From the NCBI GenBank assembly GCA_965649825.1, contig OZ287702.1, forward strand, positions 1,342,786-1,406,785: a stretch of 64,000 nucleotides of DNA. Reading direction: 5' to 3'. Source of the DNA: Penicillus capitatus (lineage: Eukaryota > Plantae > Chlorophyta). The notes under the pieces are model-generated. The model did no database searches. It saw only the letters and a program-made list of their open reading frames with translations, and was not told the DNA's origin. Shown here in pieces: positions 1 to 64,000 of this stretch. Made by a program: the position numbers and the translations under genes. Each line of letters opens with the position of its first letter. Position 1 is the first letter of the stretch.

Positions 1-579
1 CGAAAGTGAGCAAGCACGCCCGGAATGACCACCTTGGCGACGATGTGACGATGGGGTGCAGATGTCGCGAGAGCGCTGAAGAAGGGAGGTAAATTCGTCG
101 CCGAGTTCTGCGGAGAGGGAACCATTCAGCAGATTAGGAATGCGATGTCCTCTGTCCTGGCTCGTCGAGGAAAGGAACTGCCTGAAATTTGGTCTGGCAA
201 CCTCAATGAGTGATTTCGAGGTTGAAGAGGCTTGTGTCTCGTGGCAGGTACTTTCCTGGGAAAGAGAGCTATGTGCAGCTGCTGGAATCGCATGGCTTTA
301 AGGTCGAAGAGGCGATGCTTTTCGCGAGAGACACCCGTTGTCCTGCTGGAATTACAGGATGGCTTGAAGTCTTCGGAGGTTTTTTCTTCGAAGGACTGCC
401 GAAATCCATGCACCAAGAGGTGTCGTCATCGTTGTCCTGAGAATGATTCTAGCGACAATCCTGTGTCTGTTTAGCTCATCAAGGAGACCGCAGTCGAAAT
501 GGAGCCTCTACATGTCGATGAAAACGGCGTTTACCTCGTCGACTACAAGAGGTTGAGGATCCATGCCGTGAAAACGTGA
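1..579 (+). CDS. Class I SAM-dependent methyltransferase (Tam-like/bacterial-like), copy A1; 5' part lies outside the window
   Basis: Three exons joined across GT-AG introns give VARALKKGGKFVAEFCGEG...WYFPGKESYVQLLESHGF...DYKRLRIHAVKT*, stop 577-579. Homologous to the full copies at 16286, 39250 and 50278. Confidence 0.9.
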
Positions 580-837
580 GAAATGGCCCAAGAAGTACAT
601 TGACTGCCGGATCGGCGAGCTGGCGTCTTCGACTTGGTTGCTGGCTGGTTGATGAGCAGTGTGACGGTGACGACTTTCTTCCTGACGTGACATGTCTCCG
701 ACGACCTGGTATCAGCTCTATTGACTGATCCATGAAGGTGACGTGAAATTAAAGTCTTCAGTGGATGGTCTTCACTCTGGTTTTTTACTACGTAACCTGC
801 CTGCTTTTTGTTTGCTCCCAATGAACGAATCGACTTT

Positions 838-2228
838 CATCATCATTAAGCATTGTCATCATCATCATTTAATAAGGTTTATTGTGGCAGTGCATAATGC
901 ACATCAGCCACATGAACAAGGACAACACGCTGTAACGTCTCGTTTTAATACGCGGATCATATCCTTGGTGCCCAAATCGGTCTGCTCAGTTGTCAAAGAG
1001 ACCAGACTACCCCGAGTGGGCGATCCTTGACAGCCTGGCGAGTGCATCTGGCTCAGTGGGAGGCTATGGCCATGGGTTCGATGGCGTAGCAGCGCGGCAC
1101 TTTGTTCGTCTGGTCGTCTCGACATGCATCCACGACTTTTGTTTTACGCTCGGCGACCAGTTTGTCGCCGATCTGCTACTCGGTGAGGTAGACGGACGCT
1201 CCATACGACTGACAGAAGCGACATTCGGATCAAGCGGCCGGCAAGGTTGGGATGTTTCAGCAAACAAGGTCGTGTTGTTCGGTATATGGCGATGAAGCCA
1301 CGGAATCTTCAGGGCGGCTGTTGCGAAACTCGCCAGACAGTTAATGCTCGACATGGCTGTAGGACGTACAACAAATCTGGAGCTCGATGAATGATAATTC
1401 CTTGAAACGTTGCGGCACGGGAGCGTTTGGATATGTTGGCCGCCGCACTTCATGAGGATATGATTTCTGAACTCACGGGTATCCAGTTACTTCCAGTGGT
1501 CGTGGCTGCAGATCTGATGAACGGAAGGAAGTCGAGATCTTTCAAGATGCGTGCGTCTTTTTGCCTTGTGGGCAGGCTGGGAGAAATGGGTGGGTGAGGT
1601 CTTGGTCAGAAACTCTGATGACACAGCGGCGATCGTTCACACAGTTCTGCAACCGAGATAGCAAGCACAGCGGGACTTCTAGTCTCCCAACCTTCGATGG
1701 TAGCATGGAGCCATCGATCGTGTCAAAAGCCGGCGACAGATCTACAGAGGCTGCCAGCATGTCTTGTCCTCGAATCGAAGAATGATTTACCTCTGTCGAT
1801 GAGGCTGGCCACTGCTGTCTCGCATGGCTCTCGTTTTCCGAAAACCGAACTGCTTGTCGGATAGGACCTTGTTTGACTCTGACCAATGTGCTGGGAGATC
1901 CGCGATGATTCTCAAACTGTTTTTTATGACACACAGCAACCCCTCCTGTAGGAGAGGGGACGGTGAACAATATGTCAAGCCATCCATCGATGGTGATTCA
2001 CCTTCAGCGCCTCGAGACCTTCGTCCAACACCCCATCACCGTGTTGTTCGGCAGAGGCGACGTCTCTTTTTCTTTAGCGCCGGAAGGATCCGACATCGAG
2101 AGAAGGACGAAGTGCGGCGCACGGAACGGGTTGAAGAATTCCGTATCCTTTGGTTCGATGTACGACAGCTATCCTGGAAATGTCGCGTCAGGCAGATGAC
2201 TACAGATGACTCGTGCGATTGAGAAATC
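838..2228 (-). mobile_element. Degenerate 5'-truncated non-LTR retrotransposon (LINE) RT fragment with (ATG)n-type tail
   Basis: Minus-strand frames give LSDKQFGFRK and VDLSPAFDTID..MLPSKV...LQNCVNDRRCVIRV...CPQG, matching the LINE RT motifs QFGFR, DLSKAFDTV and GVPQG but broken by frameshifts. A (cat)n tract at 838-868 marks the 3' end. Confidence 0.85.
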
Positions 2229-2339
2229 TCTCGCACCGCGAGCAAACATTAAAACGCATCATCTTCCCGTCGTACAGTCGGAGGTCGTACGTCCAGGTCG
2301 TCGTTTTCGACTTCGAAAACCCGTCGGCAATCGAACAGG

Positions 2340-2612
2340 ATGGCCACGTTGCAGGACCGCTTCAACATCAACAGTCAGTTGGAGCATCTCCAGTCGAAGT
2401 ACGTCGGCACCGGTCACGCAGACCTGCCACGTTATGAGTGGGTGGTCAACGTCCACCGAGACAGCTTTGCATCGTACATCGGACACCATGGACCACTGTG
2501 TTACTTCGCCGTTGCCGAGAACGAGTCCATCGGAAGAACGCGATACCATCTGATGCAGAGAATGCTGCAGCCGTGCGGGATCCCTCCCGAGAAGAAGGAC
2601 GACGAACTGTGA
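2340..2612 (+). CDS. SF3B5: Splicing factor 3B subunit 5 (SF3b10), copy 1
   Basis: DRFNINSQLEHLQSKYVGTGHAD...HRDSFASYIGH...AVAENESIGR...MLQPCG is the family signature. Confidence 0.97.
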   Translation: MATLQDRFNINSQLEHLQSKYVGTGHADLPRYEWVVNVHRDSFASYIGHHGPLCYFAVAENESIGRTRYHLMQRMLQPCGIPPEKKDDEL

Positions 2613-2959
2613 ACGCCCCCCCCCGCCGTTTATCGCATCCCGTACCCTTGTGCAAGAGAGATGAGACGTCGTTTCGGAGGATCATAGTATCAAAGTTACA
2701 TTTTAGAAGAACCAAGTTTTTATTCCACACCAAAACGGAGGGCTGTCGAAAGAAAACCAGAGCTTCGAGGCACCATTGGGTTTGATACAATTGATATTGG
2801 CAATGATGAAGTCGTCGAAGCCCATAGACCTAAATCCCTGTAAAGAAATCCCGCGAAACAGTACTTCCTGTCGTTGCGCATTGCGCGTGCGATTGTTAGG
2901 CCCACTGCCATCGTCAGCTGTACACGCATGCCGCTCGCGTGCGCGTGTGCCGATTGCCA

Positions 2960-4039
2960 TCACTGCCAATGACCGTCCGGGACAAAATCTGTCGTCGCCT
3001 GTTGTACGCGGTACTGCAGATCCACTTCGCTCTGCAGATAGCTGCTGCATTCTTCGATGTATTCGGGGGAGCACGTGAGGTCGTTGTACAGTCTGGCCTG
3101 GGTCTCGGGGAGGTTGACGTTGAACCACGGGTCGTCCCAGATTCCGTCCATGTCGATCCGGCAGCAGGGATTCGTGTGCAGAATCCTCTGCAAGAAGGCC
3201 CGGCACTCGGGCGAGAGTCGATAGGGGTACGCCTCGAACTGCAGATCCGGCTCATCGTCCGTCTCCATCAGGTTTGTCAGCTGTCGGAGGATCGACGCCG
3301 AGTCGTCCGTGAGCTGCTGCACCAGAGGCCACGCCGTCAGTCCAAGCAGCATCTTGAACAGACACACGCCGCAGGCGTAGATGTCTCCCTTCACGGCGAA
3401 CTCGAACGAATTGCGTCGATTGTGGATCATGGACTCGGGTGCCATGTAGCCGCGTTTCCCCACGTAGGACCGCTCCCCGTTCTTCTCCAGCGACAGCTTG
3501 GAGCGCGAAAAGCCCAAATCGCACAGTATGATGTTCCAGCCCTGCGCCGAATGCTGCCCCGTGATGAGGATGTTGTCCAATGCGATGTCTCGGTTGGCGA
3601 CATTGCGCCGGTGCGAATAGTCCACCGCCAGGATGAGTTGCTGAAAGGCCCAGCGAGCTTCGTCCTCTGTAAGCGGCCCATTGCGCAGAAACTCTGCCAG
3701 TGTGCCTCCTTCTTCGTAGTTGAACGCAATCAGCAGAAAGTTTCGCGTGAGGCGGACTTCACGGAAGCCGACGATGTGCTTGTGGCAGAGCTTTCTGTGA
3801 TTCAGAATCTCTCGCGTCACTCGGCGGCATTTCCTCGAATCGATCCTGAGGACGTCGCGCGGATAGCATTTCACGGCTATCGGCCCGACGATCGTGTCCG
3901 AGTACGGATTGATGCGGTGGTCGATGACTTGGTAGACACATGCCTGTCCTCCCTGTCCCAAGAGTGCGTCTTGTCCGGGCGGTATAGAAAACCACGGTGG
4001 AAAATCAAGAGGAGCGGAGTAAGCGATATCAGCATTCAT
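2960..4039 (-). CDS. Intronless SnRK2/CAMK-like protein kinase with atypical catalytic loop, copy 1
   Basis: 359 aa ORF with GQGGQACV, AVK, REILNHRKLCHKHIVGFREV (SnRK2-like), NRDIALDN, DLG and MAPE. Confidence 0.92.
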   Translation of the reverse strand: MNADIAYSAPLDFPPWFSIPPGQDALLGQGGQACVYQVIDHRINPYSDTIVGPIAVKCYPRDVLRIDSRKCRRVTREILNHRKLCHKHIVGFREVRLTRNFLLIAFNYEEGGTLAEFLRNGPLTEDEARWAFQQLILAVDYSHRRNVANRDIALDNILITGQHSAQGWNIILCDLGFSRSKLSLEKNGERSYVGKRGYMAPESMIHNRRNSFEFAVKGDIYACGVCLFKMLLGLTAWPLVQQLTDDSASILRQLTNLMETDDEPDLQFEAYPYRLSPECRAFLQRILHTNPCCRIDMDGIWDDPWFNVNLPETQARLYNDLTCSPEYIEECSSYLQSEVDLQYRVQQATTDFVPDGHWQ

Positions 4040-4252
4040 GTCTGTCTATGTAACTCAAGCACGAGGAGAAAGGAACACGGAGGGGACAGAAGCGAAGGGC
4101 TTTAAACCGCAGACGGTAAGTGAACTGAAGTGAAGCGAAGCGAAGCTCGCACTGACGGCGGGAACGACGCGGCCAAAAGGTGCGGTCTACGCGGCTGGGA
4201 TTTGTGCTGGGAATGCCATTAACGGAGAGATGGATGCAAAATTTCCCGCGGC

Positions 4253-4858
4253 TCAGTCAACTTTGAGCTCATGCGTCATCTTCTTGACATCGGTCGGGTT
4301 ATTTTGCGAAGTCAAAACGTGAAGCAGCGTGCCTGTTGCGGAACCTACTGTGAAAGCGCCTGTGTCGCGTGCTGTCAGACATGACGCGTCATGTGCTTTG
4401 GCATTTTACCTGCGATGGTGTAGATGGAATGGTTCAGGATGAAAGGAGCAATGACTGCAGACAGCAACCCCAGAGCTGCAGAGAAACGATCGCAGCGATT
4501 CTGAGATGCGTTGTAGTGTAGACGATAAACACGATCTTCGAGACCTTCCCGGTCCATCCCCAAGAACTTGCTCAATCCCAATGCACCTAACACGTCGTCC
4601 GCCACGTATGTGTTACGTGCAATACGGGTAGGGAAATGGACCGGAGAGAGCTAAGCCGCCGGTCAGAGAGTAGCTCAGTGCTTCGGATGCGAGTCCGACA
4701 TCCAGAGGCTTTCCGGTGCGGTACCCTCGAAGTGCTAGAATCGGCAACACGATGCCGCAGCCGACTACGCTGCCAACTTGCGTCCCTTTCATACTTATAT
4801 GTTGAAAGAGACGAAGCGCCGCGTAACGACTCGGGTCAAAATCTTCGCCTGTTGCCAT
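4253..4858 (-). CDS. DUF1757-like small membrane protein, 3 exons
   Basis: MATGEDFD...GGLALSGALGLSKF...EGLEDRVYRLHYNASQNRCDRF, then a 38-nt GT-AG intron and a last exon ARDTGAFTVGSATGTLLHVLT...VD*. The family call comes from the recalled DRxYRLxxNxxQxRxD motif. Confidence 0.7.
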
Positions 4859-4945
4859 TTTTCGCTTGAATATTCGAATTGCAAGGCTGACCGTTACGCG
4901 ATGTCACATCTCAAGCGTCATCCCATCAAAGCGGATGGGTACTGT

Positions 4946-6480
4946 TCATTCAAGGGATGTCGTGCCAATTTGTGACACCCGTGTGGACTTTAGTCGATAA
5001 AGAAGGATTTGTGGCTTCCAACCAGCTTCTTCCAGCTGAGTGAGAAAATCGCCGAACCGCATGTTCGTTTCTCGAAGGCTCTGATGAAAGGCATCGATCC
5101 CTGGAGTCCAATGATGCTGTGATTGCTGCTGAAGCCATAAGAATTGCCAAAGGGCTTTGAGACAGTGCTTTGCTCCGCCTCCTTGCTTGAGCACCACAAA
5201 CCCATGTCCCTCTTCAACAAACAGCAGATACTGCTCTTCTCTGTAAACGTCAATCCACGAACTAAATCTTGCATTATGTACAAGACGTTCGGAAACGTAT
5301 TTCAACGAGCTGCCGAATTCGATAGATGGTGTGGCCAACAACCAGTCCGTCAGAATCTGCTGTTTCTGTGCCATCGTTGCGGGATCGGTGAGCGGCTGTC
5401 CAGCGAGATGCAACTGAATGAGCATACTCGATCGGACGAGGCTAAGGGAATCGAACTGAAGACATCGAAGGGCGATGAAGCGACATACGACGTGGATGGA
5501 ATGGAAAATGGCCCAGGTGACCAGAACAGGTTCCCAGCCTGTCGCATCTTGTAAAGATGACAGAATAACAACGCTTGTCAGCAAGCCTGTAAACTGCCCG
5601 GCCACCTCCCATGACTCTTCCTTGGCTGACACCTCACCAATGTTGTTGTTTCGTGCAAAATGCTGCTGGATAACACGTAACGAAGGTTTCGCCATGCCCG
5701 TTGCCAAAGCCCTGGCGAAGTTTCCCGTTCCGGCCAACAAAAGAAACTGGGAGGGAAAGAAGACCGTTGCGATCTCCAGAGAGAGCCCGACAGTGACGAT
5801 GACATCAGCCGCCATTCTCCACTCGCGTGGGTGCTGATCGATGTAGAGTCCCAAACGGCCGCCTACGAACAGACGGCCCAATGCTCCTACTCCGTCCTTC
5901 GTGATCCACTTGATCGATGCGGCGACAGCTGTTGCCGGAACCGCACTGGATCCCACACCGACAGCCCGGAGCATACTGCTGGTGGCCAGGGAAGTGCTCA
6001 CCCATCCCTAAACACATCTTCTCGTGACGATCGCGACCACGTATGTATGCCGTTCACACGGTGATATGAGTGGGCAGTGTCCACAGTTGATAGGGCAGAT
6101 AGTCAGCTGACACAGACTTTGGAAATTCCGTAGGGATAAAGAGTCCTAAAGATGCGCATCCTAACCCTGGCTGTTGGTGATGTTGCCTACCTGCCTGTTA
6201 TGGCGTCGGACAGGCGGAGCGTTTGATTCTGTAGACGGGATTTTCCGCTGTGTTTGACTCTCCAGTGACCATTGGCATCAAACAGGAGTGTCTCTGAGCC
6301 AGTTTCGACCAGGACCACCTCGTTCTGCAGAGGTTCCTGTCCAATACTTGAGATCGCACGACCAATTGTCTTACCTTTTCCGCCATCGGTCGTGCGTTGT
6401 CCGACGGCGACCGACCATTGCGGCATCGCGGCTTCCTCAGCACGTATCTTCTCTTCAGAAAGACTGTCTGTCTTGGACAT
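4946..6480 (-). CDS. ROOT UVB SENSITIVE / DUF647 family protein (start codon uncertain)
   Basis: FIPTEFPKSVSADYLPYQLW...SLATSSMLRAVGVG...WITKDGVGALGRL...WRMAAD...HFARNNNIGEVSAKEE; main exon 4946-~6001 plus two upstream exons. Confidence 0.88.
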
Positions 6481-6696
6481 GGGACCGTTCTCGAGACGTA
6501 CATGAGGATGACGGACGGTACGGGCACCGTTCCCTGTTCTCTGCGATGCTTCCTTCCACCCGTGTTCGATTAAACGCCTGGGTGACCGGAGCGATCTTCG
6601 CCGGCGTCGCCTACGTACACACACAAGTACACCCACGAAGTGTTCTCCCTGTCTCTTAGTTCCCCTCTTCGCCAGAGAACCCTTCTGCAGTCGACA

Positions 6697-7684
6697 TCAC
6701 GCGTCGTCGACGCTTTCCCCGCTTCTCGAGTCATCCCTGACCCTCCTCCTCAAGTCTGCCTGCCCACAAGAGACCAGAGATGATGCTTGGCTGTAGGTCA
6801 GGGATCCCTTGTTTGGACCTGCGTTTCGGGCGGCGTGCATCAAACAGTGGAACCAGGTAAAGGGTCGGAATTTAAAATGGAATGTATGATGTAGCCATAT
6901 CGTCCATGAATGTGTACGAAATACATCGAGAGGGCGGCAGGAGTCGCAGATCCATCACCGCCCTCACTCAATCGGAGAAAACAAAAAAAAGAGAGAAGAC
7001 ACGAGTGTTTGGCGTAGGGGATTGATTTTGTATTCGGTGGAATGGCACACGCACTGGCAAACCGTGGACTATAATGGCCATCGAAAAATCCGCCCGCAAC
7101 GTTGAATATCTCTCTGCGATGCATGAATGTCAAATCGACAATGGTCTTCCCACCCGTTGCGATTGTGACTGTCGCAAGGGACAAGGAAGCTAAAAAATAT
7201 CAGACGCCAATCATTTGCCTTTCTCTTGTTGTACATCGGATGCGATTTAAAAAAGGCGCCTTATCGGAACTGGATGTGTTCTGTCCGGTCTTGTAACGGA
7301 ACGAAAGTCTTATTCTGCGAGATACAACGCATGTCCATGCAACGCCCTGCGCGTCAAGGACATGCTTCGAGAGATCTGTACGACGGATGATTCACCGCAA
7401 TGCGACATCATGAGCAGAGAGAAGTGGTCCGATGATCGTACCTGTTTGAATTGCGGCCGCCATGTGTGATCTTTCTTGGGCCTCTGTGTGAGGAGCGCCA
7501 CCAGAAATGATCCCAGATCGAGTTCAACAGCCTCCACGATGCTTCTGTTGTTGTCTGGGGCGAGTAACGGGGAATGGCGACTTTCGGCGTCAGCGAGTAG
7601 GCCAGGAGTCTTCTCAAGGATATCGAATCCATGGATTCCGGCTCTTGCGGGTACGGGGATGACGTCTGTACGACTACATGTCAC
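6697..7684 (-). CDS. Possible unidentified multi-exon gene
   Basis: Adjacent protein-like ORFs (7310-7684, 6840-7184) with plausible GT-AG joins and a TGA near 6697; no family recognised. Confidence 0.3.
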
Positions 7685-8071
7685 ACATGTCTCAGTAAAT
7701 CACACATTACACTCTCTTTTAGCGCTTAAAAAAGTGGAAGAGTCAACAATAAGCACGTATGAATTCCAATACTGAATTCCTGGGAACCTAACTGTCTTTG
7801 GAATTTAACATCTCTCCTCGCGACCCCAGTTTCTCAACTTATTTGAATAAAAACGGATACCGTCATTTCAAACCAATCCATCCAGAAGCTACTTGAAGAA
7901 GAGAGGGGAAGGTTATTTAACAGGTGTGGCAGCAGTGGTCGTCATTATTTTCTAAGAATCGATCCTAACACGTAGAAGAAAAGAGAGTCAACAAAAAACG
8001 ATCGACGAAACCCAGTCTGCCATAGAGGGGAATCTATCAGTAACGCCACGCGTTGAGCTTTGTCGCCACAA

Positions 8072-9815
<1,744 letters not shown>

Positions 9816-10173
9816 TTATGGTGCCTCTGAGGAGTGTCCACGGGTCGATGGATGATTTGTCGACTCACTGAGCTTTATCTTTTTTAGAACCGTTGAATCA
9901 GAAGAAACTAGACGAACAGCGTCGTTAAGAAATCCATCGGTACGGGTCAATCACCACGAAACGCGTCTGTCTGTGAACGCTTTGCGAATGAAACTGTCTC
10001 GAGTTGTTGAGCAAGATTCACTCGATGCTCTGCAGTACGTGCTATTTGCAAAACTCTAATGCGTCGTGGAGATTCCTCGCAGTTGGTGCGCGCGTTGGAC
10101 TCACAAATAACATCTATTGCACTAATGCCGGCATTTCGTCAAGAGATTTCTTCCGTTCCGCAGACATACATAC

Positions 10174-10428
10174 ATGTCTCCTCCACGTGGCGCGCCGCAT
10201 TATCTGAAGGAAGTATGGAGTCCGATGGGTGGCTGGTACTGTGACCCAGTCTACTGGAGACGTAATACGGTCATCGGTCTCTGTGCCTGCTTTGCGATAA
10301 CCATACCAATGTTCTTCTACTCTGCCAAACTCGAAGAACGTCCAAACTATCCGCGACGTTGGATCCCTTCCCTACTCTGGTGCAAGAACTTCCCAGATCC
10401 TCCCTCAGGTGTGTTCTCACACAAATGA
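10174..10428 (+). CDS. Mitochondrial complex I small accessory subunit (plant/fungal KxVWSxxGGW family, NUUM-like)
   Basis: KEVWSPMGGWYCDPVYWRRNT...SAKLEERP...IPSLLWCKNF matches the recalled plant/fungal family. Confidence 0.8.
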   Translation: MSPPRGAPHYLKEVWSPMGGWYCDPVYWRRNTVIGLCACFAITIPMFFYSAKLEERPNYPRRWIPSLLWCKNFPDPPSGVFSHK

Positions 10429-10574
10429 GATTCGGTTAAGCGTGACGCGTTGGTGATGAGATTAGGAACCTCCTCCTGAGATGATGAGAAGTGACGCTGG
10501 CTGGCTGTCCAGCAGCTGATGAAACACGGTTTCAGTGTGTGCTAAGAGATGGTATCTTAAATGGGTTCGATCTG

Positions 10575-11311: not shown

Positions 11312-11532
11312 CTCTCCTCGACCTCAACCAACGCGACAGAAGGTGTACGATTGACCGTAGACGATGTTGCGACGACAACTGCTCCGAGTGCTCGATGCGT
11401 GGACAACGTGGAGAGGGGCCATTCGATTAACGTCGTCGCCGTCGTTGAAAGGCTCCGTCTCGACAACAAACCTTCAGGTGCGGGGGCAGGATTGGAATCG
11501 CTTTCGGAAAAACGCTGATCTGGTTGGCAGCG

Positions 11533-13076: not shown

Positions 13077-13282
13077 GTTCCCTTCACACTCTTCGCCCAG
13101 CGCAGCCATCGCCTATCGGCGGGATAATAGCCAGAGTGGGCCCCGGGCTTACAGCATTGGCGATCTTAGGAATTGGAATTCGGGTTGCGTTAATGAATGA
13201 ATCAAGCAGGTGAAGTCTGTCGGCGGTTGAAGATCTTTCGACTAGAAACGGGGCAACAGAAAACAGTATCCCGAAAACTGCA

Positions 13283-53200: not shown

Positions 53201-53379
53201 TGGTTCGTGAGCGAGCGTTCTGGTCGTTTATGACGTCTGTCTGTCTTGTTGTCCATCGTTTGTGCCGCCCTACTTAGCAAAAGTCGTGTCCCTGCTTCCG
53301 TGCTATATGATTCCCTTTTCTATCTTACTTTGTTTATTGCTTCCGTTCAAGAAAGAAGAAAACAAGGCTACAGAAGTAA

Positions 53380-53620
53380 ACGAACATATTTGCCGAGTAA
53401 GAAGACTTACTTTATGGGCGTCATTAAAGCTCAACCTTTTCATGAGCGTAGTGATTACAAACTGTATGACAAACAGTATGTAAAGATCAATTCTTGTCAT
53501 CGATATGCTGTTGAACGTGGGTTCCATTACAAGATCTTTAGAAGAAGATGCAGTAAACGCGTAAGCCTACGGCCTATTGAAGGAACAGACAACTCTGATG
53601 CTTTTATTGAGAAAGAATGA
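53380..53620 (+). mobile_element. Possible Mutator/FAR1-like transposase remnant in an AT-richer island
   Basis: F.....YK......YAVERGFHYKI resembles the recalled MuDR N-terminal F....A...YA...GF motif; no catalytic domain or TIR found. Confidence 0.25.
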
Positions 53621-56286
53621 TATGGTTTCATTTTTACAAAGACTAACATCATGTTTTAAACGGTTTTTATTGTGGAACACCGAGAGTTGGATGGATTTAG
53701 CGATTTAGACAATGCGTACAGTGGCGATTGTTTTGACGACTTCGTTTAGTATCTTAATCCTGCATGATTCGAGATTTGATTAGTTGTCGATGTTGTAGAT
53801 GCATAGAGATTTGGCTTATCTAAGAGAGCAACAAGAAGATGATATTTTACGACGTATGTGTAACGCCGTTTTGCATTATCTTTATTTCACATTCGTACGA
53901 CAAGTGGAAACGAAATAAGAGCGTTGAACAGTCTATGGGTTTGCAATTCGAAAACCGTAGACTTAATGCTCATAAAGGAGACCTCGGTGGGAACAAAGTA
54001 ATCTTGAGTAAAAATGTGCGACGAAGGTTGGACTTTAAAAACGTCCAACGGAATGATGAAACGTGAACATTAGACGAAGAACGAGACGTTTATGCCGTCG
54101 TTTCTAAAACAGTATGAGGAAAAACATCGATGAACTTCGACATTAGTCTGGACAGCCGCTTTCAAAGATCTCAAGAACTCAAAGTGTCCTTAATACCTAA
54201 GACCTAAAGAGCGAAGTTTAAGAGTTAGTAGATCTGATGTCCACACTGAGCAAACTATTTGCGATTCCCAGTCGATGAAGTATGTGTCTAAACACAGTTA
54301 TTGAAATTGTAATGCAAATTGTCGATCTCAGGATGATCCATACATACGCCAAGCAGAGAAAGAAATTCTGTCATGCAATGAGAGATCTGGATCAAAAGTC
54401 GGTCACAGGCATGGGTAAGTTCGATATTAATATCAGACAGAGTTTTCAGCATCAGAGTTTGCTTATGATAAGAGCACTGAACTTGGTAAACGTCCGCTGT
54501 TTGTTAAAGCCTGTAGACGAATTTCGTTTTAAAGATAGATAACGATTCCCACGATGATTGTGTCCTCAGAAGGTTGCGATTTGGTCTTGAGTACCGTTTG
54601 CATTCCTCCTAGGCAAGTTAGCTCATGCACGTCTGTCTGCTTGAAGCTCTAGCTTGCGTGACTGGCTTCATAAGTTTTGAGTCGCTGTTATTGCGAAGTG
54701 CAGTTATCGCTTCACATCGTATAGTGAACTGTCGCAGCCAAAAGCCCGTTAACGTTATTTCGCATACAGAACACGTCAACGATTCCAGTGTTGAAGCAGT
54801 GCTAGCTAAAGGAAGGAATCAGTAAAGAGAAGAGAGACTCGATTATAGTCATCATCCGCGATTTGTGTTAACGACTACGGGTAGAAAATGGCTTCGTAGA
54901 CGAATTAGCGAACACGACGTCAAAGACGTCGTTTAATTGTCACGTCACCGTTCCGTCTGAAGTGAAGCGACGCTAATTGTGCCTTCCTATGCACCGTCGC
55001 TGTAGAGAAAGCGGTCACTATCGTAGCCGTGATCACAGATCTCCCATTCTTTCCTGGCGCCTCCTTGTTGCGATTTGCGATTGGCGATATCGGATACACC
55101 CTTCTTGCAATAAAGATCTCACTGTGTGTACTACTCTACATCTGGATCGCTTGCGGTACCCGAGAACCGACAAGCCCTCGAATCAAATGTCGATTCTGAA
55201 GCACAGCGAGACAAACGGTGAGCGAACAGAAGCGCACATGCTTGGATGCCTTCCCATTTGATAGACGAAGTTGCGACGACGTCCTAAATGTCATCCGAGG
55301 CACGTTCCTCCACAGATCTCTTTCTTGTTTGTAGATAACGCAAGGCAGTTCTGACCGTCTTGAGTGCGAGATCGAAACGGACCTTTTAGAGCTGAAGGAG
55401 AGCATGACGCCGGACTTCTGTCTGAGAAGCTCGCATTCTCTATCGACGTTTTTTATCTAGAATGATGCACTCGATGGGACCGCCTTCATGCATGGTTCTG
55501 AAATGGCGAACGGCGTTGACACCTTCGCATTGAAGGCAGAGGGGTAAAAAGCGATGCCACTGCTTTCTGCAACGGATAACAGAGTACGAAGACAGTGACA
55601 ATGCTCTGACAGGCGCTCTATTACGAGTACTAGGAGAAGTGCCGTGCATCAGCAGCATCTTCGACGGATGCTTTCGATCGATCATGCTTCACGATTGCAC
55701 AGTGGGAGAGCTTTTTTCGATTTTATGCACCTTGTGCGGTACACCCTTTAGGCAACGCTAGCGCCGTAAGCAGAGGAGAGGAGTAGTCTTTGCAGCAGAC
55801 ATGTTACGAATGGTGGGTGGTGTGTCGTTGATCACAGACGACGGCAATCGAAGACATTAGGAACCGATGATATTGCAAGCATTTCTGCCCTTCACACTTT
55901 CCTTTCCGACCTGAAACCCCCATGTCACTCAAGAGAGGGGCACTGTCTGCCTCGATTTACAAGACGAAAGACGGCATCCACACAATACTTGCACCACTGT
56001 ATCGTTGCATGTATCTACAGCAGCATCGAAACTAGACGTGTCTATACATGCCTCAAACGATCTGTTAGATGGTGAGTGATAACATGACACAAAAACCTAA
56101 TTGGAACAAGATGAAGCCGAAATGGACGAGGCGTGTATGGTGGATTGCTTCAAGACAGAGCAATCTGAGGTTTAAAAGGTAAGGGGACATAACAGAGATT
56201 TCCAATGTTGCTGGTGGTGTCTTTCGTCGGCAGGATTCGTTTCAATGGCACAGAGGTAGCTTACTTTGTCCATGCCGCGGTTCACT

Positions 56287-56500
56287 CTGCCTCGTTGGAC
56301 CGCGAACCGCAGAGGGCTGCCTCGTTGGACCGCGAACCGCAGAGGGCTGCCTCGTTGGACCGCGAACCGCAGAGGGCTGCCTCGTTGGACCGCGAACCGC
56401 AGAGGGCTGCCTCGTTGGACCGCGAACCGCAGAGGGCTGCCTCGTTGGACCGCGAACCGCAGAGGGCTGCCTCGTTGGACCGCGAACCGCAGAGGGCTGC
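56287..56500. repeat. Perfect tandem repeat, 7 x 30 bp (CTGCCTCGTTGGACCGCGAACCGCAGAGGG)
   Basis: ctcgttggac recurs at 56291, 56321 ... 56471 with no variation. Confidence 0.98.
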
Positions 56501-56942
56501 CAATGCCTAGATCGTCTAGGCAGTCATCTCGAGGCATGCTCACGCAGAGAATTCGGTACCTTCTAGCTAAACGTGCCCTCGCGAGGCACTGCTGTCTTCA
56601 TTCTGCAACAGCTCGCAGTCAACGCGTTTGTGTTTCTCGCAGGAGCACGTCAACAAGCCAAAAGACGGTTGTGCGAACATCCTTGTCCTCAGCGGTGATT
56701 TGTCGGCGGATGAAGATGTTCTTGTTAATTCACATGATATGCGCCGTTCGAACGGAGCCGCCTGTGTTCGTGCAGCCCCGTCCAGCAGATGAGCGGTCCG
56801 ACGGTTGCGAAAAAATGAATATAAGCGTGCACAACTCCGTGCTATTCACTTATAACATTTGTCTGCTATCCCCTTCTCCTTAGATTCTTCTTTAGAAGCA
56901 GCAAGAAACAAGGCGTAGTGATTGACTTTATACTGCGTAGTG

Positions 56943-57897
56943 ATGAAGGCAGTGTTTTCTCTCGTGATAATTGCGGTATGTCGACCGTGGAGGAAGCTCG
57001 TTCTTCTGTGAAAAACGCATGTTCTGTGCAGGCGCTGGCCGTTCACGCAAATGGACGTTGTTTCCCCGGGTCATCCAACTGTGGTAAGTGCCGAAGGTTC
57101 AAATCTAGTGCTTAGCTGACCCAAAATGTTTGGCAGGTTCTTATGACGCTGCATCGTCATCCAAAGCTACTCGCCATTTGTATCAATATTTCAAGCCGGA
57201 GGCGACGACGGATTCAGCTGTAAATACTGCCACGGGAGTGATGGGCGGCGTTTTTCCAGGCTCCGGATTCGCAACCGCCGATGCTGCAGCCGTCTCAAAT
57301 GCGTTTACCCTTGGCAATGTTGCTGCTGCAGACTCCTTGGGCGGTAGCGATGCTTCGGCGGTCACGGTAGGTGACGTTGCGGCGATTGGAACTGCCGACA
57401 GTTTCACTTCCGGATCTGCCACGACTCCCACAGGCTTTGCGGGTACGGTGTCGGTAACTAATACCATTGCTGGAGCCGCATCTGGCCTTGGCGGAGCTGG
57501 CAATGCAATCGGTAGCACCGTTTCCGGTTCGGCTGCGGACACTTATGGAGCCATGCCTATCGCGGCTTCCACGACCACCGGCTATGGCGAATCGGCAGCA
57601 GCAAACAATGCCGCCTCCGGGACATCTACTGGAGGAGGATCTGCTGGAGTCGCTCAGAACTTCTACGGAGACGCTGCATACGCGCAAACCGGGAGCCAAA
57701 TCGACACTGCAACTTACGCTCCACCAGGCGGCGCAGCGCAGGCTGCTGGTGGCACCATTTTCAATGCAGCAGCAGGAACAGATCCGCTTGGAAAGTATTC
57801 TACTTCTCAAGGTGCTGCCAGCTCTGGATCATCGGCGTCGAACGGCGGCTCGTCCGGAGCAAGTGCCGGAGGAGCTGCAGCATCCGGGAGTCACTAA
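56943..57897 (+). CDS. Secreted Ala/Gly/Ser/Thr-rich protein, 3 exons
   Basis: Exons 56943-56975, 57032-57083 and 57137-57897 give MKAVFSLVIIAALAVHANGRCFPGSSNCGSYD...RHLYQ..., with canonical GT-AG introns and a signal peptide. Confidence 0.85.
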
Positions 57898-58279
57898 AGA
57901 TCCCTTATCTCTCATGATCCCCATTCTAACGGTGGAAGAAATAATGACATCAGCTGTGGTTAACTGGGGGACATTCTTAACTAACTCTGACACCTCAGAA
58001 GGCTCGTTCTTCTTTTGCGTGTTTTCTTCTGCTCTGCTTTTTAAGCTGACGTGTTGTTTTGTTTGTTGTACGAAGCAATGTTGTCATCGATCACGTCGAT
58101 ACGATGATGGGGATGATTTTTATGTTGAACATGGTGTTTTTGTCTTTTCATGATGCAGTTATCTGAAACAATGCGTGTCCTCGCTACGTCGCCTTCGCGT
58201 GTTCTAAAGCATCACACATTCCCACTGAAAAGGATACAGATATGGAGCTGTGACAATCGGAGAAGATTCCAAATACGAC

Positions 58280-59840
58280 GCTCGCCGATGATCAATAGGT
58301 ATAGTTCTGCAGCTAATCGTACAACGCTGTTGTCCACTTGCAGTATGCATTATCGACCACGCTTCGGGTATGGGCAGCCACTTGCTTTTCGCTTTTATCG
58401 AGATGAAAGCGATTGCGAGTGTTCCTGACGGCATCGCCTCTTTCGAAGCAAGGCAGTCCAGAATGCTTCATGAGAGCGACACATGTTATGATAGGATCTG
58501 CTACGGTACGTGCAGCGAGAAAGGCGCGAATGCACATGTCCTCGAAGGTGTGATAGAATTTCGAGTTCCGCATTACACCAGAATCGAGCAGCTGCGTCAT
58601 TTCGTGGCTCATCTTGAAATCTGCGCTCTCGAATTTCATGTTCCTTCCGGAAGAGATCTCCAAGATGAACCCGAAATCGATGTGCACGAGATGGCCCTCG
58701 GAGTCGATGAGGATGTTGCCGTTGTGTCGATCCTTGCGTGCAGCAGAAAACTGGCAATGGCATCGCCTGCTTCGGAAACCATGAAGTTGTGCCGAGCTGC
58801 TTCGAATCGTGGCGACCCGGTGCCTCGAATTCCCTCTGAAAGATCTCGTACAGACCGCCATCCGTCGTCTCACTCAAAGCCAATCGAGATTTGCTGTTCG
58901 GCACCACTTCGATGATACCCGTCTCCACAGAAACTCGAGTTGCTCGTCTGATGGAAAAATGCAGGAGGTCATACGTTTCTCATACCCCACCGCAATCGCA
59001 CCGTAGGGACAGAGAAGCAATCTGGCGTTCTCCACTCGTGCCTGCGACGGCTGCAGCGACCATGATGTTGCCGATAGGAATCGCCACGCCGTGGACATCT
59101 GCTTTCTGAGTTGCTCGCCATCCGTCGGCCAACGTGGCACAGGGTACTTCAGATGCCACATCACAGAGTTCCAGGATGGGAGATGCATCGCAGCAGCTCT
59201 GTTTGACGAATGAATGGCTGACATCCCACTCCAAAGCGACCGTGCACTCCACAGAAGTGGACCCCCTCGAGCGAACAGAGCCCTGTCCTGAACTGGTGTA
59301 AGGAGTGTCCGTTTCGCCGACCTCTTCCAGGAGATGAATCGATGAGGGCATCAGCATCTGCAAACGACTCGGATTATCGCTCATGGACTCACCGATACTG
59401 ACACCCGCCGAAACCAACTGCATTGGTTTCTGCAACATATGCTTTGCGCTTCCCTTCCCAAAGACGGTAGACCAAGCGGGTCGCCAGTTTTGCAGCGGCC
59501 CGAACAAGATCTCCTGACGGTGCTCTCTGTCTGTTCACGAAAGACATGCCGGATTGTGGTCCCACATCCAGTCTCAGTTTTCTGTCTGGACCCGACTCCA
59601 AGATCGGTTTCAGCGCCGACTGTACAGATTCGCAAGCAAACGAGACGATTCGACTAGGGTTCCCACTGAGATGTCCACAAACGGCTGGGCACAGACAATG
59701 AGCGCGTTTGGAGTATCGATCGGAAAAGCGGCCGAGACGATCGGAATTGTCATGGCCATAATCTTCTCATCGTCCAGTTGATCGATAAGTCCCTTTGTTG
59801 CCATTCCACTCGAAACGAGATCGACAGAGATGTGTGATAC
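58280..59840 (-). pseudogene. PI4KA: Phosphatidylinositol 4-kinase alpha, C-terminal kinase region, frameshifted
   Basis: LCPYGAIAVGYE, GIIEVVPN, KDRHNGNILID.EGHLVHIDFGFILE, SGLPCF; at least two 1-nt deletions and a premature TAG after ALYD. Confidence 0.85.
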
Positions 59841-60387
59841 CATATACGCATCCGCCTCTAAGTCACACAGCTGTGAGGGTTCCCTGCTGAGGATTAGTGA
59901 AGACCTTGTGTGTAAAAGTGGTCATGAGCCACTGCAACAGAGCATAAGCGTGCTTAGGGGGCATCAGGATGTTGTCTTCCAGCTCAGCATCGCGTGCCAG
60001 GGCACGTACAAAGAAATATCGTGTGGCCGGTCCCGACGATACCTTTCCTTCAGGATCCACACAGATTTTGATGACATCGTGGACTGTCTGACTGATGTCC
60101 TCTACGAACTCCACCGGAAGAGACGACAGCACCATCACCCTGAAGAAAACGTCCATTTCCTTCTCTATCCTCTGCTCGTACAGACTCTTACGCTTTCAGC
60201 TTCAGCAGACATTGTGTCACGGCTTTTTGGAAATTGAACGTGTGTTCCGAATGTAGATTGAACACCTTGGGGAGGCTCTTGAAATGGTCCAGAATCAACG
60301 GTACCAGATAATCCGCGTGCTAGACACACCATCACCACTGTCATTTCGCTATGATGCGAATGCACCTGTCCATCTGATTCTTCGAGA

Positions 60388-63360
60388 AAGCTGCAGAGGG
60401 GAAGGATGACTTCGTCCACGATGCTCGGGAAAGAAGAGCCCCCTTTGAGAAGTATCAAGAGTTCGACGCCTTCATCGATGAACTGACCCTCCTGGATGAT
60501 CAAAGCTGGAAGACACTCAGACTCGTGCGCAATCCAGAACGGCCACAGTAGTGTTGACGACAGACGATGCTGCGGCTTCGATGCGTTGAACAATCGTACG
60601 CATTGCAGCTCCGATTACCCGTTCTGCTCTTGTCACACCTTTAAACACCCACTGTCCCTGACAGCAGAGTATCGAACGGATTCAATCGTAAGCCGTGATC
60701 GGAATGTCGGTAAGAGAGACGAGCGCCGTTGCTGTGTGTTGTATAATTAAAGAGTATGGAACGGTATGGTCAGGGTTCTCAATAGTCCTCCTCTTCCTCT
60801 TCTTCTTGAATCGCCTTTGCCAATTCCTGTTCCTGTGCCAGTCGTTCTTTTCTGGCTTCGGCATCTTCAAGGGGTGGTTTGTGAGCCTCGGGGTCAAATC
60901 GCATGGCCTTGACGGCCTGCCACCACACATCTCTCCACGGGATCGATGACGTGACGTCTTCCTCACCTCGTTGTGTATGTCAAGGCAGAAGGCAATTCTG
61001 GCATGGAACGCTTTCTGAGGTTCCTGCGTCGAGTAGATGTCGGCCACTTCGATGCTCTGCATGTACTGCTCGTCGTGATTGATGGTGGCATCGATTCCTC
61101 CATCCCGAATGGCCTTGGCCACCACGTGCTCCGTATCGTCCTCTGGACCCAGTCCCAGCTTCTGGGCGACATCCTTGAGGGAGATTCTGGAGTAAGCAAG
61201 GTTGATTCTTCGCAGCCCTGTTCGAAGGACGTTGTGGTGTAAACGGGTAATGAGGTTCTGCGTGTGGTCGGCATGGAAGTTACTGGCGTACTGTTGCGCC
61301 ACGGCTCTAGACAATTCGTTGGGCGGCAGGCGAAAGCGGCTGAGATCCGACGCACTTGAAGGCGCTGAGGTCGCCGCCGCGGACAGCCTTGGTCACCTGG
61401 AAGTAGGGATGCAGTTCGCTGGACATCCCTTTCTGTAAGAAGTCGCTCATGGGCGGGATCTCTCCCAACAAAAGGCTCACTAGAACGACCCATTTGTTTA
61501 CCATCACTCGAAAACCGTGAGCAGAATTGGGCGCCTAGACGTCACACACGGATTCGATCTTCGTCTGACGCGTCGAACATTTGGTCACACTTTCCGCGCC
61601 GCCTGAAGGAGACAGTCCTTTGCGTCGGTATACTCCAGCTGGATCGCACGGATTCTTCCCCAGTAATACAGGTAGCGCGCCACCTGCGCCGTGTTCACCG
61701 TGGGCTCCGGTGCCTTGGATCTCAGTTTCTCGGCCTGCCACACATTCCGTCTCACTCTGTCAGCAGCGCCGTGAATCGGCACTTGATCGTAGAGGTTGTA
61801 GTGCAGATAGTTCCTGAGCAGAAGATTGAGAAGCGTCTCCTGCGTGATATCGTCGTGCTGCAGCACCGCCGTCTGCAAACGACACAGCAACTGCCTACGC
61901 GTGAGCGAGACACACAGAATCAGGTCCGTTGCCTTCTCAGACCGCATCGCTCACGGCCGGATCTCTTTGAGGCGATCGAGCTTCTCGTAGACCAATCCGT
62001 AGTAGAAATAGATCTTCGCTCCGACGGCATCGAGCGTGCGGCGATTGTACGAACCGAGTCTCTCGAAGGCCTCGTCCGAGACGCTCTTTGCCTTCTGGAT
62101 GTTGCCGCTGCCGATCAGGAAGAGCTGTGCCAAGAGATACGAATACATCTCCACCTCCGGCAAAACCTGTCCCTTCCCTTCTCCCGCCATCACTCCGTTG
62201 GAATCCAATTCCATCGAATCTTCGGACTGGACATGACAGCAGCCACTTCGCCGCTGTCCTCTGCATCGTGGCTCACCGATGCGAGATGCGAGAGGATCGA
62301 ACGGCGGCAGCGGTGATTCTCGGGATAGATCTCTTTGACAGAGGCGGTCAGAATGGCGGGGGTCAACTCGTGCTTCAGTGCATTGGTTTCGCGCAGAACC
62401 CGACCGACCAAGGCGCGAGTGTCGCGCTCCTTGACAGCTTGACTGAGCAATTCCCTTGCCTGTCTCAGCCGCTGCGCCACGCTTGGCTTCGTCGTCGTCG
62501 CGACACCGTCTTTCTCGCCATCCGTCTGCGTCGTCATGTCGTTCGCGAGCTTGCCCATATCGACCGCGTGTTCGTTCGTTCGGTTGGTACGTGCATCAGC
62601 AGTAGACGAACGCCAATGGCGGATGGCACTGCATTCACGATGGTCGAGCTAAAAACGACAAGCGCCAGTATCAAGGAACACTATCTCTCCCTGGGCACAT
62701 GGCCTTCCAATGACAAGCTCCCCATTGTGTACAGCCGCAACTACAACGTTGCTTTCTACGGCCTCGAGAAATTGAACAGCTTCGACGCATGGAAACTGGA
62801 CAGGATTTTCCAAGTACTGGTTGAGCATGGACTCGTTCGAGAGGGAGAACAGCCGAGTCCAGTAGGCCCTGTGCCCGACGAAATTCTGGCCGCTGTTCAT
62901 GAGGCATCGTATCTTCAACAGACGAACACTTCGAAGCTGAGCGTCATTCGTCTGACGGAGCTGCCGGGTCTGATTCTTCTGCCGCAGTTTATGATACAAC
63001 GTCACATCGTCACACCTCTCAAGTACCAAGTCGCGGGAACCGTTTTGGCCCTAGGAATCGCTTTGGAACGTGGATGGGCGATTCATCTGGGAGGAGGCAT
63101 GATCCACGGGAGCTATAATCGCGGCGCCGGATGGTGTCCGTACGATGACGTTTCCTGCGCCATACATTACGCCAGATCACACGTTCCTTCGATTCAACGT
63201 GTGATGGTCATCGACTTGGGAGCGCATCAAGGAAACGGCTATCAGAATACCAAACTTCATTTCCAAGACGAGGATCTGTTTATCGTGGATGTCTACAACG
63301 AAGTCACGTTTCCTCAAGACCTCAATGCACGCAAGGCTATTAATGTTGGCCGCAGTCTTC
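60388..63360. repeat. Segmental duplication D2
   Basis: Inverted copy of 21811-24791. Confidence 0.95.
60779..62558 (-). CDS. RPN3: RPN3/PSMD3, copy 2
   Basis: Same exon structure and near-identical translation to copy 1. Confidence 0.96.
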
Positions 63361-63665
63361 CGTGTGGCGCCACGACGGATGCCTATCTTTCTGCCGTCGT
63401 CTCCGCCCTCAACACTGCTGCCGTCCAATTCACACCGGATGTCATTCTCTACGTTGCTGGAACGAATGTACTGGAGGAAGATTATAGTGGACAGTTCTGT
63501 GTCACCCGAGACGATGTCTATCAGCGAGATCGTCTCGTTTTTCAGTTCGCCCAGACAAAAGGCGTGCCAATTTGTATGTTGGTATCCAGTGGATATGGCA
63601 AGACCAATTTCGAAGTGGTGGCTGAATCTGTACGACGTCTTGTGACTGAATTACCATTGTGTTAA
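62616..63665 (+). CDS. Class IV (HDAC11/HDA2-like) deacetylase homologue, intronless, catalytic residues substituted
   Basis: PIVYS..YN..F.GLEKL..FDA, ERGWAI.LGGG, AHQGNG, RD.LVF and GY all align with HDAC11. Confidence 0.9.
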   Translation: MADGTAFTMVELKTTSASIKEHYLSLGTWPSNDKLPIVYSRNYNVAFYGLEKLNSFDAWKLDRIFQVLVEHGLVREGEQPSPVGPVPDEILAAVHEASYLQQTNTSKLSVIRLTELPGLILLPQFMIQRHIVTPLKYQVAGTVLALGIALERGWAIHLGGGMIHGSYNRGAGWCPYDDVSCAIHYARSHVPSIQRVMVIDLGAHQGNGYQNTKLHFQDEDLFIVDVYNEVTFPQDLNARKAINVGRSLPCGATTDAYLSAVVSALNTAAVQFTPDVILYVAGTNVLEEDYSGQFCVTRDDVYQRDRLVFQFAQTKGVPICMLVSSGYGKTNFEVVAESVRRLVTELPLC

Positions 63666-63704
63666 TCCTTTTTCGCGTTTGTACGTTCGGTCAGGCCTCT
63701 TACG

Positions 63705-64000
63705 ATGGCGGAATCGTCTGAACGTGTGCAGAAATTCGTGGAGAATGCAAAGCAGAAGCTTCAGGTCTATCTAGACCGCAGCTCGCGCTACATCGCCTAC
63801 CGATGGGCCGTCCTCGTGACGCTATGGTGTGCATACTTTATCCGAGTCTACCTCCTGGAAGGTTTCTACATCGTCACCTATGGCCTCGGCATTTTCAATC
63901 TCAACCTCCTTCTCGGCTTCCTGTCGCCTCAAATCGATCCAGAGAGCGAAGGAGACGTCCTGCCCACCATCAACAACGACGAATTCAAACCCTTTGTCCG
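63705..64000 (+). CDS. RER1: Golgi-to-ER retrieval receptor RER1 (runs off the window)
   Basis: YLD...RW...FYIVTYGLGIFNLNLLLGFLSPQIDPE...LPT..NDEFKPFVR. Confidence 0.95.
   Translation, partial: MAESSERVQKFVENAKQKLQVYLDRSSRYIAYRWAVLVTLWCAYFIRVYLLEGFYIVTYGLGIFNLNLLLGFLSPQIDPESEGDVLPTINNDEFKPFV

Follow-up and report, generated by a model that had tools for sequence, protein, structure and literature searches.

Split-flank duplications of housekeeping genes in a rearranged 64-kb stretch of the Penicillus capitatus genome and their possible origin in staggered-break inversions

Introduction

Inverted duplications of unique, mostly genic sequence have been described at 17 of 29 inversions in the melanogaster group of Drosophila; they were two-sided in six of the 17 and one-sided in the others, staggered breaks with fill-in were proposed as their cause, and re-use of breakpoints was reported (Ranz et al. 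2007; PMC1885836). The duplicates of that set have a median length of 321 bp, a maximum of about 1.9 kb and a mean identity of about 88% (PMC1885836). Here we describe a stretch of 64,000 nucleotides of Penicillus capitatus (GenBank assembly GCA_965649825.1, contig OZ287702.1, positions 1,342,786 to 1,406,785 of the forward strand; hereafter the window) in which three gene-bearing segments, B (SF3B5 and a protein kinase), C (COX15) and D (RPN3), are each present twice. The locus resembles the Drosophila breakpoint duplications in that the duplicated genic sequence was ancestrally unique and would mark the ends of inverted segments, each copy has one old flank, the junctions share no repeats and a breakpoint appears to have been re-used. 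It differs from that set in the length of its duplicates (2.2-5.3 kb), in a density that would amount to five inversions within about 57 kb, in the extra DNA present at junctions (segments T and fill), in one pair that is now direct, supposedly through later inversions, and in its host, a green-alga-like protist; moreover, the copies are intact and homogenised by conversion, whereas many Drosophila copies decay.

The template-switching rearrangements of human genetics, such as fork stalling and template switching (FoSTeS), microhomology-mediated break-induced replication (MMBIR), duplication-triplication/inverted-duplication (DUP-TRP/INV-DUP) and chromoanasynthesis, are single-generation events and mostly de novo or pathogenic alleles. 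The window shares with them clustered local junctions, duplications and triplications in both orientations, microhomology (at two junctions) and a possible templated insertion, but its duplicates appear to be of at least two ages, and its arrangement is common to both of two diverged haplotypes from a natural population. Palindromes and large inverted repeats, as in the primate Y chromosome and in plastids, undergo arm-to-arm gene conversion, and the C and B repeats of the window are likewise homogenised in their centres and diverged at their edges; however, the repeats here measure 2-3 kb and lie 15-40 kb apart, one pair is direct, and D is without conversion. Finally, rearranged mating-type (MT) loci are known in green algae, namely the Chlamydomonas/Volvox MT and the Ulva MT, and dense local inversions, duplications and pseudogenised fragments in a green-alga-like genome are common to them and to the window; in contrast to those loci, the haplotypes here are collinear, their divergence is mosaic, and the interval spans about 60 kb rather than hundreds of kilobases. 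The process proposed here is already known, and it is the density of this cluster, and the extent to which it can be reconstructed, that are unusual.

Results and Discussion

Three gene-bearing segments are duplicated, each copy with a different ancestral flank

Comparison of the window with itself by BLASTN returned three long pairs, all with E=0: C (11320-14337 versus 44568-41551, inverted, 3018 bp, 99.2% identity), D (21811-24791 versus 63360-60388, inverted, 2981 bp, 98.6%) and B (2229-4380 versus 36398-38556, direct, 2164 bp, 97.5%). These pairs confirm the duplications that an earlier reading of this DNA, made from the letters alone (the sequence-only reading), had proposed, and the six junctions listed by that reading were correct to a few bases (2229-2234, 14337, 21796-21811, 38556, 44564-44568 and 60388). 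It had taken the three duplications to be independent. Self-comparison of the window revealed further layers, that is, an A pair (851-2234 and 17575-18968, 95.6%), an E pair (20837-21796 and 35183-36140, 92%), an old short E-like repeat at 14667-14917, four copies of a 1.1-1.3-kb unit R (84-88% identical) that codes for a class I S-adenosylmethionine (SAM) methyltransferase. The whole interval 14338-21810 also belongs to a repeated unit of 7.5 kb, T. In addition, the C and D pairs interleave (C1<D1<C2<D2), which makes two independent, non-interacting simple inversions impossible for C and D. The order of blocks along the window (Table 1) is R1 A1 B1 u1 C1 (u2 R2 A2 u3 E1) D1 u4 q E2 u5 B2 (u6 R3 u7) C2' (u8 R4') u9 D2' u10, with two copies each of D, C and B, three of E if the one in the major haplotype described below is counted, and single-copy stretches interspersed.

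The ancestral order was read from a sister lineage of about 85% nucleotide identity in ERZ26696514 (4.08-Mb contig, record positions 1979894-2036804), which served as outgroup. In this sister stretch of about 57 kb, B, C and D are present once each in one collinear block, whose gene order is SNF2 ... Miro ... RPL4, Rer1, HDAC11-like, RPN3, LF, ankyrin genes, an ERCC4-family exon, z1, E, u5, SF3B5, kinase, UVB_sens, COX15, an unnamed gene, u7, R, u6, about 5 kb of X, kinesin, R, a 663-aa gene, JmjC, PP2C and PCI. Its sole internal repeat is an inverted R pair (428-1569 and 8406-9552 of sister piece L011), and a second sister contig, 99.2% identical, is collinear with it.

Alignment to this order showed that D1 runs on into the LF/ankyrin side and D2 into the HDAC-end/Rer1 side, that C1 keeps u1 and C2 keeps u7-R3-u6, and that B1 keeps u1 and B2 the E-u5/ankyrin side, every ancestral adjacency at D, B and C thus being retained by exactly one copy. 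In agreement with these data, B1-u1-C1 forms one 12-kb block collinear with the sister that ends exactly at 14337, u4-q-E2-u5-B2 is collinear with the ankyrin ... E-u5-B stretch of the sister, u8-R4 corresponds to the sister block that follows kinesin, and the collinearity of u10 extends at least 10 kb past the window. The suggestion of the sequence-only reading that each copy is continuous with only one ancestral flank was therefore borne out at all three segments. One ancestral and one novel flank per copy, and duplicated sequence that is single-copy and non-repetitive in the outgroup, are what the model of Ranz et al. leads one to expect.

A fourth, decayed duplicate, in inverted orientation, was recognised in remnants of the sister ERCC4 region: q (33611-33823) and zl (51985-52205) both align with one part of that region, in opposite orientations. 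Sequences like E and u5 lie upstream of B in the sister too, and these two observations indicate that the oldest duplication began within the ERCC4 region, took in z1, E and u5 and ended at the right end of B, a length of about 5.3 kb on the sister contig. An ERCC4-family (XPF/MUS81-type nuclease) exon at 51647-51712 is itself cut at a rearrangement junction, and residues 44-67 of the 107-aa open reading frame (ORF) of the sister are still recognisable in it; no intact ERCC4-family copy was seen in the approximately 90 kb examined.

Intact central genes and broken neighbours

The central genes had been proposed to be intact twice, and this holds for their reading frames in both copies of each segment. 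The SF3B5 proteins (90 aa) are identical, the kinase genes (359 aa) differ at 5 nucleotides, all of them synonymous, and neither the three exons of RPN3 nor the COX15 exons contain stops or frameshifts in either copy.

The positions of the breaks in genes were read with the sister ORFs as probes. At 21811 the HDAC11-like gene is broken off at about codon 248 of 349, and the truncated copy in D1 forms an open frame of 475 aa (21656-23083, minus strand) that crosses the junction into E1 and thereby has a chimeric C-terminus. This chimeric ORF is annotated as a gene in a public protein collection. At 14337 the break cuts an exon of the unnamed minus-strand gene, of which C1 keeps residues 16-119; the upstream exon of this gene is absent from C1 and present once, at 41236-41424. 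At 44568 and 38556 the breaks lie upstream of genes, about 210 bp from the COX15 ORF and about 340 bp from the ATG of the kinase, respectively, and the break at 60388 lies about 315 bp past the RPN3 stop, no more than about 10 bp from the point where LF ends in the other copy.

The same junctions are present in a second haplotype

A second version of the locus, referred to as the major haplotype, was available on a 6.93-Mb, 344x contig (ena:ERZ25074695:ctg340592_344x_l), of which six overlapping pieces were joined for comparison. B, C and D are all present twice on this contig, its junctions 14337, 21811, 38556, 41551/44568 and 60388 are the same as in the window, and the alignments between the two sequences run uninterrupted across the junctions with 98.3-99.9% identity. 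ORF products of the window, which is eukaryotic, are known from metagenome assemblies, and the truncated HDAC copy and the C1 COX15 ORF are on record from this contig. Positions 36759-58156 of the window are, in turn, 100% identical to a 36.8-kb, 21x contig of ERZ25074695. The divergence between the window and the 344x contig is mosaic, with values of about 0 over 8-29 kb (window 8000-29377, about 21 kb) and of 1-2% on both sides, which suggests that the rearranged region has undergone recombination or has lost heterozygosity. The window is a second haplotype or strain relative to the 344x contig.

Apart from two larger indels, of 3.1 kb and about 10.7 kb, the two haplotypes are collinear. At the first of these, the window lacks about 3.1 kb at the A1/B1 junction (2229-2234), whereas the 344x haplotype has u5, E and a full second copy of T (T*) ahead of B1 and the kinesin gene left of B1; the B duplication of the major haplotype therefore extends leftward through u5 and E. 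The junction at 2232, which the sequence-only reading had taken for a duplication boundary, is a later deletion private to the window haplotype. The second indel lies at q, where the major haplotype has about 10.7 kb more than the window, including a long-terminal-repeat (LTR) retrotransposon of about 4.65 kb with identical 140-bp LTRs and with gag-aspartic protease, reverse transcriptase (RT), RNase H and integrase; it occupies positions 15629-20013 of piece L008, between u4 and E2, and is absent from the window (between 33082 and 36131). On a smaller scale, a 25-bp tandem repeat at 17505-17589 has 3.4 copies in the window and 3 more units (75 bp) in the major haplotype.

An assembly artefact, in which uncollapsed alleles or a chimeric walk through a repeat graph would have joined haplotype copies in one contig, is suggested by the metagenome assembly that was the source, by the identity of the window to the 344x contig over 8-29 kb and to the minor 21x contig over 36.8-58.2 kb, and by an allelic divergence (about 1-1.7%) near that of the paralogues. 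Nevertheless, both copies of B, C and D lie with the same junctions on the 6.93-Mb contig, and when the four sequences (two paralogues in two haplotypes) were compared, 26 (D), 18 (C) and 12 (B) substitutions separated the paralogues in both haplotypes, a pattern that is unexpected for alleles. Furthermore, the copies differ in their flanks and each flank matches the single locus of the sister on one side, one HDAC11-like copy and one copy of the unnamed gene are truncated at a precise base, and the junctions show biological microhomology. Shared junctions together with paralogue-specific substitutions in two to three independently assembled haplotypes argue against uncollapsed haplotypes; misassembly or uncollapsed alleles are thus unlikely as the cause of the duplications, and we consider the chimeric-contig explanation highly improbable.

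The sequence-only reading had also raised a recombination-suppressed or accessory region, such as a mating-type locus. This idea found no support, since the haplotypes are collinear apart from indels, the content of transposable elements (TEs) is low and the mosaic divergence looks like that of a recombining region, with the limit that both haplotypes could be of one mating type. No mating-type or sex-determining genes were recognised among the ORFs scanned.

Junctions, T and fill

Transposon ends were absent from the junctions, and microhomology of 3-7 bp was seen at the two for which both parental sequences are known: in B2/u6 these sequences, which resemble each other imperfectly over about 17 nt, are joined directly at CAGAC within that stretch, and A1/B1 shows 3-6 bp of microhomology, TC.CGC, at 2229-2234. 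The T/D1 junction contains at most 14 nt of ambiguous origin, and the ends of C are sharp at the base level. Beyond the duplicates themselves, no repeat shared by paired junctions was found, which again agrees with the model of Ranz et al. Additional DNA separates C1 from D1 (T, 7.5 kb) and C2 from D2 (v6, zl and fill, 15.8 kb), and this is counted as sequence of the other breakpoint in the five-step path described below.

Two candidate origins for this additional DNA were rejected. T is not a transposon, since no TE domains (transposase, RT, helitron), terminal repeats or target-site duplications were found in it, its left "end" falls within E0, an old E-like paralogue, and on the right it simply stops at the break beside D1. 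Nor is the fill a decayed u4 copy or LTR debris, since neither u4 nor the LTR element of the major haplotype resembles it. Within the fill, a perfect tandem array (56287-56501) has 7.2 copies of a 30-bp unit with 100% identity, and a C-terminal fragment of a PI3/PI4-kinase (58316-58873, minus strand; Pfam positions 147-240 of 241) has no recognisable N-terminal part nearby and is probably a gene fragment brought in with the fill DNA. An AT-rich patch at 52000-56000 (GC 0.42-0.46 versus 0.52 overall) is without long ORFs.

The R genes of the window and the sister cluster by species and not by position, which indicates that the dispersed copies are under concerted evolution (gene conversion) in both lineages, and an attempt to assign positional orthology of the R copies by tree failed for this reason. 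Since R copies do recombine, ectopic recombination among R paralogues or T-family copies might be held responsible for the rearrangements, as might gene capture by a mobile element: R copies and T-family pieces lie near several junctions, and an inverted R pair was already present in the sister. However, recombination between repeats would not duplicate unique flanking genes, none of the six named junctions falls inside R, T has none of the features of a mobile element, and the only recognisable TE at the locus is the polymorphic LTR element that the window lacks. A repeat-driven origin therefore seems quite improbable.

Divergence, ages and gene conversion

The distribution of the paralogue-fixed differences along the segments was not the same in the three pairs. 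In D, the 26 differences are evenly spread (0.87%), without any haplotype-shared pattern or sign of conversion. In C, all 18 fall in the first 920 and the last 250 bp and none in the central 1.85 kb, in which one allele has 16 private changes; if fixed differences were uniform, the chance of such a gap would be about 4e-8, and the gap is a conversion footprint. In B, the fixed differences are found almost only in the last 130 bp (about 8.5%), and four haplotype-shared and four crossed sites point to continuing exchange.

Divergence is 6-8.5% for the E copies (the three being 93.4-94.2% identical to each other) and the unconverted B edge, as opposed to 0.9-1.1% for D and 0.8-1.5% for C. Unconverted sequence thus points to two epochs, B/E/T being older and C/D younger. 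Such ages are lower bounds because of gene conversion, and in the constrained cores of B, C and D the paralogue divergence is similar (1.2-1.5%).

The duplicates may well be by-products of stacked staggered-break inversions

When the single-copy blocks were treated as a signed permutation relative to the sister order, their reversal distance was 5, and an explicit path of five inversions was found that reproduces the observed order, though only if T and the 8.2-kb fill were allowed at one early junction, that of steps 1-2. In this path the three duplications arise as one-sided staggered ends, and all new adjacencies of steps 3-5 are present in the final order. We therefore lean towards the view that the split-flank duplicates are by-products of inversions of the type proposed by Ranz et al., with breaks offset by kilobases; the chemistry of break and fill-in, and the order of the events, are what we infer. 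The sequence-only reading had pictured a hotspot of repeated staggered-break rearrangement, and both the outgroup order and the five-inversion path, with duplications at inversion ends, speak in its favour.

According to this mechanism, two nicks or breaks a few kilobases apart would leave long overhangs whose filling-in would provide both new junctions with the stretch between the cuts, so that each copy would stay with one old neighbour and gain a new one. The oldest step would be an inversion of Zl (the ERCC4 region) ... COX15 ... W, whose staggered left end would duplicate Zl-z1-E-u5-B (about 5 kb), and the second a plain inversion of X, kinesin and v6. Step 3 would invert D ... fill with a stagger across D (RPN3 and part of HDAC11-like), producing the junctions 60388 and 21811; step 4, a plain inversion, would produce the junctions of the ERCC4 remnant with R4 and of kinesin with z1; and the youngest step would invert T ... 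C' with a stagger across C (COX15), producing 44568 and 14337. Steps 3-5 would re-break the junction of steps 1-2, where T and the fill sit, and later gene conversion between copies would keep the central genes near identical while the edges diverge. The order of the path (B block, D, C) agrees with the divergences. The C and D pairs are inverted and interleaved and B is direct, and the orientations expected under the model of Ranz et al. are obtained only in a multi-step path in which copies have been re-flipped.

Several simpler schemes were discarded. Two independent simple inversions for C and D fail, given that the pairs are interleaved and that undoing one makes the other direct. A single inversion with staggered breaks at C as well as at D, in which T and V would be captured filler, reproduces the local order and was demoted after V was seen to hold ancestral neighbours (v6, which lies beside kinesin, and the ERCC4 remnant) and the five-inversion path had been found. 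Excision and re-insertion of Zl' v6' gave the wrong order of Zl and v6 in simulation.

A number of points weigh against stacked staggered inversions. For an interval of about 57 kb, five inversions that re-use one junction are many, and the path is not unique: two orders were obtained for its last three steps, the final two being swappable. Searches from the bare sister order without breakpoint re-use found no path within 5-6 steps, the permitted moves being deletions, tandem duplications, cut- or copy-paste and inversions, these last with duplicated ends or without, and every new adjacency being required to be final. T and the fill sit exactly at junctions, and their origin is unexplained by the model. 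The duplicates exceed the 1.9-kb maximum of the Drosophila set, and very long unwinding or chromatid-type staggered double-strand breaks would be needed for their length; the direct orientation of B1 and B2 fits only if one copy was re-flipped by later inversions. Gene conversion blurs the dating, and all duplications may have a common age. Lastly, the path assumes the adjacency beyond kinesin (X' with the next block), and with one outgroup the two plain inversions are assignable to either lineage.

The main rival is that a replication fork or broken end, in one or very few replication-based complex events (FoSTeS, MMBIR or chromoanasynthesis), copied about nine neighbouring segments while changing their order and orientation, with two copies made of D, of C and of the Zl-B block and three of E. 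In favour of such events are the presence of at least 8 novel junctions in 64 kb, all from one ancestral interval of about 57 kb, the interspersion of copy gains with single-copy stretches, the triplication of E and the occurrence of both orientations, the microhomology at the two junctions with known partners, the resemblance of T to a templated insertion from the neighbouring T*, the failure to find a path from the sister order without re-use of breakpoints, and the similar divergence of the B, C and D cores. In contrast, unconverted sequence points to two clearly different ages, 6-8.5% (E and the B edge) versus the 0.9% of D, which is evenly spread and without sign of conversion; T is only 88-95% identical to T* and hence is not a recent template copy; and the five-inversion path explains all adjacencies. 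We regard replication-based events as unlikely, although they deserve serious consideration. A more extreme version, in which all or most junctions come from one germline-equivalent replication-based catastrophe in a unicellular alga that then spread through the population, with the duplicates of the essential single-copy genes RPN3, COX15 and SF3B5 kept functional by selection and conversion and with the differences in age due to uneven conversion, we regard as decidedly unlikely.

A fractionating segmental duplication, also put forward by the sequence-only reading, would require that the interval was duplicated once, in tandem or inverted, and that reciprocal loss left B, C and D doubled. 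It would account for the single-copy state of the genes outside B, C, D, E and R and for the different neighbours of the duplicates, and a tandem duplication from z1 to kinesin would be expected to give the kinesin/z1 junction. However, as read from the block order without computation, the ascending blocks are fully reversed relative to the sister (X-K, then Zr-B-u1-C, then D-b-E-u5-B), the descending blocks are out of order too (W-C before v6), and three direct and two inverted copies would be required, all of which is incompatible with one duplication followed by losses. Moreover, the boundaries of the duplicates are base-sharp and not eroded. This origin is hardly credible.

If the duplicates did arise through stacked staggered-break inversions, the locus would be a clean, outgroup-polarised case outside animals of inversions creating gene duplicates, with stretches several-fold longer than in the classic Drosophila set and with normally single-copy housekeeping genes intact in both copies. 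A stack of five inversions within about 57 kb, three of which broke one and the same junction, would make it a concrete example of a fragile, re-used breakpoint region, and one that is traceable across strains of an alga. The conversion footprints suggest a route by which breakpoint duplicates escape decay. In genome scans, repeats that interleave, in inverted and in direct orientation, and that have split flanks would be decodable into an ordered inversion history, given a sister genome.

Segments and other features of the window

The segments of the window and their genes are collected in Table 1.

Table 1. Segments of the 64-kb window, with genes and ancestral neighbours (nucleotide positions of the window)
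Segment	Position	Strand	Content
R1-A1	1-2234	+	Partial T-family unit: R paralogue and segment A; allelic to T* of the major haplotype, 4% diverged
B1	2229-4380	+	SF3B5 2340-2609 (+); protein kinase 2963-4039 (-); right flank u1 ancestral
u1	4381-11319	+	Single-copy; UVB_sens/RUS gene 4949-5974 (-); collinear with sister between B and C
C1	11320-14337	+	COX15 exons 11944-12640; minus-strand unnamed gene truncated in exon at 14337; left flank ancestral
T	14338-21810	+	u2, R2, A2, u3, E1; occupies the C1/D1 junction
D1	21811-24791	+	RPN3 22613-24462 (+); 5' two-thirds of HDAC11-like 22555-21811 (-); right flank (LF, ankyrin) ancestral
u4	24792-33278	+	LF 24800-25273 (-); FERM/PTB gene 27297-29523 (+); ankyrin-repeat genes 30666-33278; ancestral neighbour of D
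q	33279-35182	+	Structurally polymorphic spacer; ERCC4-region Zl remnant 33611-33823, ancestral orientation
E2 and u5	35183-36397	+	Ancestral upstream neighbour of B; copies: E1 20837-21796, E*-u5* in the major haplotype
B2	36398-38556	+	SF3B5 36509-36778 (+); kinase 37127-38203 (-); left flank ancestral; right end joined to inverted u6
w (u6, R3, u7)	38557-41550	-	R3 methyltransferase 39187-40343; ancestral right neighbour of C, inverted relative to B
C2	41551-44568	-	COX15 43944-43248; complete unnamed gene continuing into u7; broken at 44568
v6 (u8-R4)	44569-50342	-	JmjC 45255-46220; 465-aa gene 46759-48156; R4 49065-50342; adjoins kinesin in sister, beyond C-W-X
zl	51647-52205	+	Remnant of sister ERCC4 region (L001 1626-2066); orientation as D2/u10; cut in ERCC4-like exon
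fill	52206-60387		8.2 kb between zl and D2
D2	60388-63360	-	RPN3 62558-60709 (-); HDAC11-like 62616-63662 (+), intact into u10
u10	63361-64000	+	HDAC11-like end; Rer1 start 63705-63998; ancestral right flank of D
R copies	1-872; 16235-17543; 39187-40343; 49065-50342

Scans of the window for tRNA genes and Rfam families gave no matches, and for the ORF at 4946-6001 there was no public record under that start codon. The closest named relatives of the COX15 and HDAC11-like products are those of chlorophytes (Ulva, Botryococcus, Myrmecia, Bryopsis and Coccomyxa) and land plants, with only 47-57% identity, which suggests a green-alga-like protist of a sparsely sampled lineage. The FERM/PTB (IRS-type) gene of u4 lies in a stretch of about 5 kb between LF and the ankyrin genes that has no counterpart at that place in the sister contig.

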